A DNA stretch of 64,000 nt from positions 1,113,687-1,177,686 of the forward strand of contig JAWQFM010000011.1 in the NCBI GenBank assembly GCA_033442325.1, in the 5' to 3' direction. The stretch is from Salpingoeca rosetta. Its lineage: Eukaryota > Protista > Choanoflagellata. This document shows positions 10,588 through 18,039 of the stretch, in pieces. Made by a program: the position numbers and the translations under genes. The notes beneath the pieces were generated by a model that saw only the letters and a list, made by a program, of their open reading frames with translations, was not told the DNA's origin and did no database searches. Position 1 is the first letter of the stretch. Each line of letters begins with the position of its first letter.

Positions 10588-14165
<3,578 letters not shown>

Positions 14166-14490
14166 CACGGGCATGTGCTTGTTGTTGGGTGTTGTGTCTT
14201 GTCCGGGTCTGAGTCCGTGTGCGTGTGCATGTGTGCGACTTGTGGTCTTATGGAATCATTGTGTGGATTCGCTGTACATATGAATGTGATGCATGTTGTC
14301 GTTGGTGCGTGTGTGTGTGTGTATGTCAAGGTAAACTCGTTTAGCGTCGCCACAATACACGCGCGTTCCACCATCAACGCCAGCGAACAATAGGGAGAAG
14401 AGCACAAGAAAGAGCGAAAGCGCAGGAACAGCTCGGGCAGCAACAAAGAACAGTCGAGAGCCACGTACAAACACAAGACAGAGATAGCAA

Positions 14491-14522
<32 letters not shown>

Positions 14523-14540
14523 ACAATGCTACACGAGTGG

Positions 14541-15914
14541 TCATTCGCCCGTGTCAATGAGCTCCTCGTTGTTTCCCAGCAGCGGCTCCCGCAGACCGCC
14601 ACCGCCACCACCACCGCTGCTGTTGCCATTGCTGTCATTGGGGCGTGTGGGCGTTCGGTCCAGCGAATCTTGCGTCACGTGTGCACGGAATGCTGTGGAT
14701 TGCATCATGGGTGGCCCAAACGGGCGCTGAGTGATGGTCTTGCGGTGGTGCATGTACGTGCCAGCCTCGTCACCAAGGCCAACCTCCTCTTCAATCTCGG
14801 TGCTGGTGAGCAGCGGTGTGGCCTTGGTCGGCTCCAGCCCAAAGGGGATGTGGCCAAAGGTTGCGTCCATGCCAAGGGGCGCGTCCATGGATGGCATGTG
14901 TTTCCAGTAGCGAAACGCGGCGCCCTGACGGCCCCACGACACTTCTTCGTCCCAAACGCGTTTCAACACATGTTCGCAGCCGTGCGCGGAGAAGGGGTCG
15001 TACATCATCGCAGACACCTTGAACCAGCCAACCTGTAAGCAAAGGGGGGGGGGGAGGACAGAGGTGGTGGGATGTTGGGAACGCGAGGAGTGGATGGTGG
15101 GAACGGGAACGTGCGTGTGCGTGTGTGCGTGTGTGTGTGTGTGTGGGGGGGGGAGGATTGTCAGACACGCTCACACAAACAGACAGACAGATAGATCGTC
15201 AGGCAGAGCCACGGACAGACAGACAGGTCGGCAGACAGGCAGACACAACCACAGACACATGTGCACACACAGACACACACACAGACACACACACAGACAC
15301 ACACATGACCACACACAGACACACACACACACACACACAGACCAACACACCACATTAGCTGCACAGGAACAGGTGGCGGAAGCGACTTACGAAGAAGATA
15401 AACTCCATCATGCCAAACCAAGGGAGGTAGTAGTCCACAGTCTCGCCATTACGCAATCGCGGGGAGGATGAGGGAGCAGCTTCGTTGCTGAGGTGGAACT
15501 GGCGCCCAAACACGGCCGCAAGGAAGTACGAGTACACGGCAAAGCCAATGATGTTCACCATGACAATCGGGATGGGGTGGTTGTTGAAGCCACGCAGGAT
15601 GGCGTTTGACGTGCGCCACGCAACCAGCTCCTGATTGCGGCGTGTTGCGTGTTGTGTGTGTTGTGTGTTGTGTGGTGTGAAGAAGAAGAAGGAAGCAACG
15701 GACGGGTGGATCAGAGGGTAAGCGAGACACGGGGCACACACAAGAGCGTTTGAGATGCAAATTCATTTGGAGGCACAAAGTCAAGTCATCCACACACACA
15801 CACACACAGAGAGACAGACAGGCAGATAGATTTACAGACACACACACAGAGATAGATTCACAGACACACATGCAGACAGACAGACAGACAGATGCACAAA
15901 TAACCCCCTGGCCA

Positions 15915-15996
<82 letters not shown>

Positions 15997-17399
15997 CCCA
16001 ACGTTCAGCCACGGCTTGCGTTGCCACTGACCGTCCTGAGGAGGCGGAGATGGGAGGAGGAGACGACGTGTTGCGGGCGGTCGCGCTCGGCCCGGCGAAG
16101 CAGCTCCCCAGCCCACAGATAGCAAATCTCCACCTGCGCCTCGCACGTTTCCAAAAGCTCCCGCTCCTCGTGGGTGAGCAGGCCGGCGTCCATGAAGCTC
16201 TGCAGGTCTGGGTAAAGCTTACGGAAGCTGGTGGAGATGCGCTGGAAGGTGATGCCCATGCCGAGCAGGATCCACCGCATAAACGTCCATCGCACGTGCA
16301 GGCTGCCAGGGGCGAGGAAAGGCGAGGAAAAGCGGGGAGTGGTGGTGATGGTTGTGGTTGTGGTGGTTGTCGTGGTTGTCGTGGAGGTGAACGAGTGGGA
16401 ATGGTGGTGGTGTGAGCATGAGACGCACGAGAAGCAAGGCATTGGAACGCACGCACAGCATTGGAACGCACGCACAGCATTGGAACGTGCGCACAGCATT
16501 GGAACGTGCGCACAGCATTGAAGCGTATGCATATATGCATGCGGAGAGATGAACAGCAGCAGAGTGAAGCATCCAAAGCACATGTCAGAGCAGGCAGGCC
16601 AAAAAAAAAATAAAAATAAGAAAGAAAGCAAACAACAACAGACACATAGACAGCACTGCCAAGCGGTCACACACGGCAGTGGCGTCTCACCCCTCTGGGC
16701 CATCACGGTCGTCCATGTCGTGAATGAGAATGGCAATCTTGCCGATCCAAGGGATGGCTTGCCACTGGCTCCACCAGCGCCCGTAGACTTGTGTGACGTA
16801 GAAGCCCAGCACAAAGGTGAGGGGGATCAAGCCCTGAAAGCTCTTGCAGTAGGAGAAGAACGCCTCCATGCGGGACTGCACATGGTCATCGGACAGACGG
16901 TACACGGCTCCGACGATGCCGTACATCAGCAGCCAGATCAGCAGCTCTGGCACCACAGCCTGCAATGGAGTTGTGATGCGAAGGTGGGGGTGTGAGCGCA
17001 TGCATGGTGTGAGAGAACAGGATGACGAGCAGGCGCGGGTGCAGGCGCGGGTGCAGGCGCGGGTGCAGACGCGGGTGCACGCAAGGGAAAGTACACTGGC
17101 AAAGGAGTGTAGGCTGGGGAAGTGCACTGACAAGGCGTGCAGACTCACGCATACACACACACACACACACATGCAAACAAACACACACACACACACATGC
17201 AAACAAACACACGCACAACCACACACAACCACACACGCACCTGCCAGATGGAGTAGCGCCAGACGGAGAAGAGCCCCTGTCTAAAGATGGACAGTGGTTG
17301 TACATAGGAAGTTGACGACTGCTTGGACCGCCGTAGGTCCTTCTTCCACAACGGCGGGTCCTTCAAATGATCGTACGGATCAGGGTTGAAGATGCCCAT
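14541..17399 (-). CDS. Bestrophin family anion channel (animal-type, divergent C-terminal clasp)
   Basis: [92 protein letters not shown] motifs across five exons. Confidence 0.9.
16439..16521. repeat. 19-bp tandem minisatellite (GCATTGGAACGYRCGCACA) in a bestrophin intron
   Basis: Four full copies plus a partial copy read directly. Confidence 0.9.
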
Positions 17400-18039
17400 G
17401 ATGCTTTGGGGTGCAACGTGGAGGCGAGGTGGAGGTGGGAGTGTTGCAGCGAGCGAGCGAGCCAGCGGCCACAACTCAGACTCGTTGACGACAGCACAAA
17501 AGGTAGTCACACAATCTCCTGCCGTTTTGTTTGTTTGTGTGTGGCGCTTTCCTTTTCCTTCTGATCGCGATCGCCGCTGTATCCCTGCCGCTACCTCTCT
17601 TGTGTTCTGTTTATTGGCGCCGCCTTGAGTGTGCCCTGCCCAACGAACCATTGGCTCCCCCCTCTCTCCCGTGACTGCCTTTCAAGTGCAAGCGTCGTTT
17701 GCGTTTGCGTTTGCGTGTGTGTGTTGATTCGGTTTGTCAATTCCTTTCCATTTTGCGTGCGACAAAGCCCCCCCCCCCGCTTGACTTTACACCAGCGCAC
17801 GTCATCGACAACAGCCGCCACTCTTGTTTGTTGTTGCGTGTTTTGTTTTGGTTTTGTGCTCTGACGCGTGGTTCGCTTCAAGCTAGAAGTGCAGCAAGCT
17901 CTGTGTTGTTCGCACAACCTTGACGACTGCTTGGTTCGTTGGTTCCTCAGTGACTTGCTTGGTTTTCTTCAAACGTTGCTGACTCGGGTCAAATCATCTG
18001 AATGGTCGAGCACTCCCAACTGCGCCCACGCCGTACACC

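Follow-up and report, generated by a model that had tools for sequence, protein, structure and literature searches.

The window (the whole stretch of 64,000 nucleotides analysed here) is eukaryotic DNA of ~55% G+C from Salpingoeca rosetta, and within it we have resolved a bestrophin gene of five coding exons on the minus strand (window 14541-17399; 1431 bases, 476 codons). The exons and the features of the encoded protein are collected in Table 1. The exon model was obtained by reading positions 14400-17800 frame by frame and inspecting the borders, and all four introns, which are CA-rich, run from GT to AG. The exon translations are exact substrings of a single database protein, P0001 (PTSG_04541, 476 residues, "Bestrophin homolog" in UniRef), which was found at 100% identity in the search with exon 3; only residue 143, encoded by a split codon, falls between them. 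Full-length analyses were carried out with this database record, matched exon by exon. The original prediction, that of a bestrophin lacking the acidic Ca2+ clasp, had reported no disabling lesion, and the GT-AG borders of the five exons, the 476 codons and the match to P0001 bear this out. The string of 27 residues on which it was built is reproduced exactly by the minus-strand translation of 14530-15035, and the range it gave (14950-15032) is right to within one codon (the codon of G315 begins at 15029, and that of the last Asp finishes at 14949). The clasp segment sits at the beginning of the final coding exon, directly past a canonical AG acceptor.

An exon able to restore the acidic E-D-D-D-D run of animal bestrophins had been named beforehand as a refutation of this prediction. 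When the minus-strand frames of 13500-18000 were read (with 15249-15323 masked), there was no run of four acidic residues and no P-F followed by acidic residues, and therefore the locus holds no exon that would restore the clasp. Three transcript-derived orthologues (see below) carry the same loop and splice to it; expression and splicing in S. rosetta are presumed from these transcripts and from the annotation. For the S. rosetta gene itself, the contigs encoding P0001 came from the NCBI genome record only, with no cDNA-like contig among the matches, and ~0.4 of the sampled words were present in sequencing runs guessed to be RNA, a value near the exonic share of the stretch that gives a weak indication of expression.

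Regarding the surroundings of the gene, all four introns are full of (CA)n/(GT)n and (GACA)n tracts (15036-15390, 16033-ca.16000, 16303-16690, and 16960-17240), 15249-15323 being the CA-rich part of intron 4. The neighbouring gene (window ca. 11110-11690, plus strand, and beyond), annotated with Pfam RTC and RTC_insert in the NCBI record, codes for an RNA 3'-terminal phosphate cyclase and is convergent with the bestrophin gene. Between the two lies a perfect trinucleotide repeat of great length (~60 units; window ca. 12075-12290), which reads as poly-Asp, poly-Met, poly-Ser or poly-His depending on frame and strand.

Table 1. Exons and protein features of the S. rosetta bestrophin gene (positions in the window, residues of P0001).
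Feature	Position	Strand	Residues	Description
Coding exon 1	17241..17399	-	1-53	ATG at 17399; GT donor after 17241; matches P0001 1-53; start ATG, clade-conserved N-terminal extension, beginning of helix S1
Coding exon 2	16691..16959	-	54-142 and two bases of codon 143	AG/GT borders; TM1, neck helix, PWIG loop; best PF01062 exon match (75 bits)
Coding exon 3	16032..16302	-	Last base of codon 143, 144-233	Cytosolic helices; family RFP motif reads L-Y-P (Y173, P174)
Coding exon 4	15391..15630	-	234-313	TM3 and TM4; clade-invariant R-G-F-N-N-H-P motif; aligns to chicken BEST1 215-283
Coding exon 5	14541..15032	-	314-476 and TGA	End of TM4, remodelled clasp, post-clasp helix, low-complexity tail
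Hydrophobic neck	16801..16827	-	I98/F102/F106	I76/F80/F84 of animal BEST1, by alignment to chicken BEST1
Coupling tryptophan	15024..15026	-	W316	W287 of animal BEST1, by alignment
Remodelled loop	14970..14999	-	D325-P-F-S-A-H-G-C-E-H334	Occupies the place of the animal clasp; AlphaFold2 loop 325-335, pLDDT ~82-84
Animal BEST1 E300			A329	By alignment
Animal BEST1 D301			H330	By alignment
Animal BEST1 D302			G331	By alignment
Animal BEST1 D303			C332	By alignment
Animal BEST1 D304			E333	By alignment
Animal BEST1 F305			H334	By alignment
Post-clasp helix	14919..14966	-	336-351	AlphaFold2 pLDDT ~95; clade-conserved; outside the Pfam bestrophin profile match
L-x-x-P-L-L motif	14577..14594	-	460-465	Kept in all five clade proteins, rest of tail unconserved; L464/L465 invariant

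Fold, neck and clasp region of the protein

P0001 matches the Pfam family PF01062 with 220 bits (cut-off 24.2) over residues 43-327 (profile positions 20-298 of 324), and Pfam adds no further domain to the bestrophin one. The end of this match, at residue 327, falls just ahead of the clasp. Among PDB sequences, phmmer retrieved BEST1 and BEST2 chains only (E 6e-42 to 6e-37), in alignments with chicken and human BEST1/BEST2 that are unbroken across the G-W-x-K-V...P-F end of TM4 and stop at residue 329 or 330. Used by itself, the clasp exon (45 aa) was too short to yield a bestrophin match among the same PDB sequences, and the alignment was anchored via exon 4 and the full P0001. An AlphaFold2 model of the protein, based on an alignment of 46 sequences (mean pLDDT 83.9), displays the bestrophin protomer fold, i.e., four transmembrane helices and a helical cytosolic domain, and its top 22 Foldseek matches are all BEST1 or BEST2 chains (chicken, human, mouse, and bovine) with target TM scores of 0.80-0.90 and 25-30% identity. 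By homology, we infer that the S. rosetta protein is a homopentamer conducting anions.

The hydrophobic neck, defined in animal channels as I76/F80/F84 (PMC8496536), is intact as had been predicted, with I98, F102, and F106 aligned to these three residues. In the G-W-x-K-V...P-F end of TM4, the column of W316 is nearly invariant in the 46-sequence alignment; its animal counterpart W287 couples the clasp to the neck in BEST1 (PMC6342527). The RFP signature of the family is altered to L172-Y173-P174, with the Pro alone retained. Tyr at the Phe position of this signature is fixed in the clade described below, while at least 85% of the canonical proteins have Phe.

In the animal clasp, Ca2+ is bound by the D301 and D304 side chains, by three backbone carbonyls (A10, Q293, N296) and by a water molecule, while E300, D302, and D303 assist its binding and mutations in the acidic cluster produce Ca2+-insensitive channels (PMC8496536). 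The S. rosetta protein has a different loop in the same place (Table 1). The gapless alignment first proposed, with A-H-G-C-E under E-D-D-D-D, is supported by HMMER up to the clasp and by MAFFT together with a motif table of 154 homologues at the clasp itself. A carboxylate is left at the D304 position only, D301 being replaced by His (Thr in one relative) and D302/D303 by Gly/Cys. The original observation is confirmed, and its interpretation is partly supported, in that a bestrophin which is intact in other respects and under selection lacks the canonical acidic clasp.

The N-terminal segment, which closes the clasp in animals (V9/A10), has a different sequence in S. rosetta and is ~22 residues longer than in metazoan BEST1-4, with a conserved motif of its own; alignments of this segment differ by ~5 residues, and residues 16-34 are modelled with pLDDT <50. 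Residues 11-30 (window ca. 17310-17369, minus strand) form an extension that is absent from animal bestrophins and modelled as disordered. Its motif, beginning D-P-P-L-W-K, is conserved in the four full-length proteins of the clade, and the extension may be a regulatory or phosphorylation segment.

The five-protein clade

To find relatives of P0001, we ran two word searches against 5.8 billion proteins and scanned 1.84 billion cluster representatives once with HMMER. Among the matches listed, there are four close relatives, designated P0002 to P0005, and a word search repeated with residues 60-375 recovered the same five clade members as the full-length search, in which low-complexity words were dominant. 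Three of them come from EukProt transcriptome assemblies, in which their ORFs are complete: P0002 with 75% identity to P0001, P0003 with about 60%, and P0004 with about 53%. The fourth (P0005, about 50% identical) is encoded by an ENA metagenome contig. Taking together the identity levels and the EukProt naming, we infer that P0002-P0004 come from other choanoflagellates, and the five proteins apparently constitute a small, choanoflagellate-specific subfamily. No further clade member appeared when JGI metagenome contigs were scanned with the clade patterns. In the ENA contig (L004, 3387 bases), P0005 is encoded mostly by one long exon, with a separate bestrophin-like exon upstream (678-947 and 1379-2464), and the intron layout therefore differs from that of the five-exon S. 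rosetta gene.

The replacement loop is uniform within this clade. G-C-E-H (G331, C332, E333, and H334) is invariant in all five proteins, and the preceding His is kept in three of the four relatives, the exception being P0005 with Thr. Identity within the clade reaches 0.85-0.87 over residues 322-345, compared to a mean of 0.60 over residues 60-375, which places this segment among the three most conserved stretches of the protein (over residues 331-345 the value is 0.85). Invariant sites are also enriched in residues 324-350 (17 of 27, vs. 88 of 259 elsewhere; Fisher p = 0.003). We gauged selection by protein-level conservation, since P0002-P0004 exist as proteins only and the synonymous sites of P0005 would be saturated at ~50% identity. 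Neutral evolution, another outcome that had been set against the prediction, does not agree with a loop that is invariant in five proteins and a segment that is among their most conserved.

Outside the clade the picture is very different. Nearly all the other top ~150 representatives with a locatable motif, from the 1.84 billion proteins scanned, carry G[EDG]DD[DE]D, with a few partly acidic exceptions (P0030, P0072, and P0148), and the nearest matches beyond the clade, a nematode and a centipede protein, both have the full clasp. In an unrooted maximum-likelihood tree of 75 sequences the five proteins are monophyletic (SH-aLRT 100), and their stem, with ~2.6 changes per site, is the longest branch, with the clade on one side and everything else on the opposite one. 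The distant bacterial-type family has no clasp, and nearly all the other PF01062-type proteins have it. A separate observation concerns the clusters of P0148 and P0132, which were recovered from marine metagenomes (Tara 0.22-3 um fractions among them). These are animal-type bestrophins, short (~320 aa) but complete, and have partial or altered acidic clusters (G-S-D-A-D-S and N-N-D-D-D-D, respectively). Either picoeukaryotes or large viruses are possible as their source.

To describe what else is particular to the clade, we compared it with 39 canonical sequences, taking the positions at which these are conserved to 80% or more. Two fixed changes turn PWPD into PWIG (P103 to I and D104 to G), another replaces a near-invariant Gly by R138, and F150 to Y accounts for the LYP in place of RFP. 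The remaining ones belong to the clasp region: N296 to D, D302 to G, D303 to C, D304 to E, F305 to H, and R313 to E. Judging from these sequences, it is the whole sensor region that is remodelled, beyond the acidic run alone.

Gating of the channel and its alternatives

Without Ca2+, the clasp of animal channels is disordered and their neck closed, and binding of Ca2+ orders the clasp and allows the neck to open; W287 relays the state of the clasp, and the W287F mutant is nearly Ca2+-independent (PMC6342527). The loop described above suggests that the S. rosetta channel is probably gated differently from all the animal bestrophins studied. We consider it reasonably probable that it would not be opened by Ca2+ through the canonical clasp and that something else keeps the loop ordered. 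This could be the packing of the loop itself, or a soft ligand of the Cys/His type such as Zn2+, which would also confer redox or pH sensitivity, and in both cases the state of the loop would be passed to the neck via W316. Independence from Ca2+, one of the possibilities raised by the original prediction, is plausible. A more specific version, contained within this reading, is that the Cys-Glu-His loop (with His330 in most members) would act as a transition-metal (Zn2+-type) or redox/pH sensor that has taken over from Ca2+ and opens the neck via W316. We rate this version as rather unlikely. A His-x-Cys-x-His metal site with three ligands is weakened by the Thr that P0005 has at the position of H330. 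H251 is among the other conserved His residues of the S. rosetta protein.

Alternatively, the Ca2+ site could have been rewired and the channel would still be activated by Ca2+, with the carboxylates of E333 (D304 position) and D325 (N296 position) as ligands, backbone carbonyls providing the rest, and Cys and His in a structural or affinity-tuning role. The change of D304 to E is conservative, and Asp at the N296 position, fixed in the five clade members, is rare in canonical proteins. Moreover, the canonical site employs only two side-chain ligands, three of its five protein ligands being backbone carbonyls, and neither W316 nor the neck nor the overall fold has changed. However, His or Thr has taken the place of the direct ligand D301, none of the three auxiliary acidic residues is left, and channels mutated in the acidic cluster are reported to be Ca2+-insensitive (PMC8496536). 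A Ca2+ site would also leave the strict invariance of the Cys and the His unexplained, and the segment that donates the A10 carbonyl has been replaced by clade-specific sequence with pLDDT below 50. We regard a rewired site as the main rival, a real one though less likely than the reading above.

A modulatory subunit, for which the original prediction had also allowed, or a dominant-negative one would co-assemble with canonical Ca2+-clasp bestrophins. Bestrophins are pentameric, and mixed assemblies are conceivable, but the 55.4 Mb S. rosetta assembly contains one PF01062 gene, with all three exon matches above the cut-off at this locus, and when the same assembly was searched with a canonical nematode bestrophin, this locus alone was matched, revealing no canonical paralogue. 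Lacking a canonical partner in the genome, this reading therefore fails, and we consider it very improbable. For two other S. rosetta loci the only match is to the distant bacterial/fungal Bestrophin_2 family PF25539, one of them (L005, G000:C4:526070-526717) with 137 bits and an open frame of 295 codons without stops, and the other (L006, G000:C7:1509096-1509224) with 35 bits. Finally, a decaying or neutrally drifting gene with an eroded clasp is hardly credible, for it would account for the loss of acidic residues and nothing more, against a complete ORF with canonical splice sites, a replaced segment that is more conserved than the remainder of the protein in five proteins, and orthologues recovered from transcriptomes as complete ORFs; a pseudogene was rejected on the intact ORF and the conserved replacement segment.

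The S. rosetta protein can be compared with several known bestrophins. It shares with metazoan BEST1-4, which are Ca2+-activated Cl- channels, the PF01062 family and fold, the I-F-F neck, the equivalent of W287, the G-W-x-K-V...P-F end of TM4, and the position of the loop past TM4. The two differ in the clasp (E300-D304 and F305 in metazoans, A-H-G-C-E and H in S. rosetta) and in PWPD, RFP, N296, and R313, which become PWIG, LYP, D, and E; and, unlike the metazoan proteins, that of S. rosetta is no longer matched by the Pfam profile past P-F. The clasp is conserved among metazoans (PMC6342527). On the other hand, KpBest from Klebsiella pneumoniae is a pentamer without a Ca2+ clasp and is insensitive to Ca2+ (PMC8496536), and therefore the bestrophin fold can gate clasp-free. 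KpBest is of the bacterial/fungal type (PF25539), with ~14-15% identity to the S. rosetta protein and a Foldseek E of ~1e-5 (vs. 1e-16 for the animal channels), and has an IIF neck and Na+ selectivity, whereas the S. rosetta protein, a member of the animal-type family, has an IFF neck of the anion type. The bestrophin fold is also found in the plant thylakoid VCCN1/Best and in the algal rhodopsin-bestrophin fusions (bestrhodopsins), where gating is by voltage or light and not by a Ca2+ clasp, but these are distant subfamilies or carry fused sensor domains. Compared to them, the S. rosetta protein has no added domain and is altered in the clasp region alone. In our literature search, no paper treated choanoflagellate bestrophins in substance, and none contained the locus tag PTSG_04541.

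Bestrophins have been studied almost solely as Ca2+-activated Cl- channels. In the present case, an animal-type bestrophin from the sister group of animals has a different, equally conserved sensor loop set on the same neck and coupling tryptophan. Such a natural replacement of the clasp could reveal how the clasp region controls the gate, and it bears on the timing of Ca2+-activated chloride conductance relative to the origin of animals. Were the metal or redox sensor to prove true, the closest unicellular relatives of animals would be pairing the bestrophin scaffold with another ligand, and activation by Ca2+ through an acidic clasp would have arisen, or been kept, separately on the lineage to animals. 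As S. rosetta is amenable to genetics and carries just one bestrophin gene of the animal type, knock-out, tagging, and heterologous recording should be straightforward. At the other end of the protein, the L-x-x-P-L-L motif of the tail may be a sorting signal.
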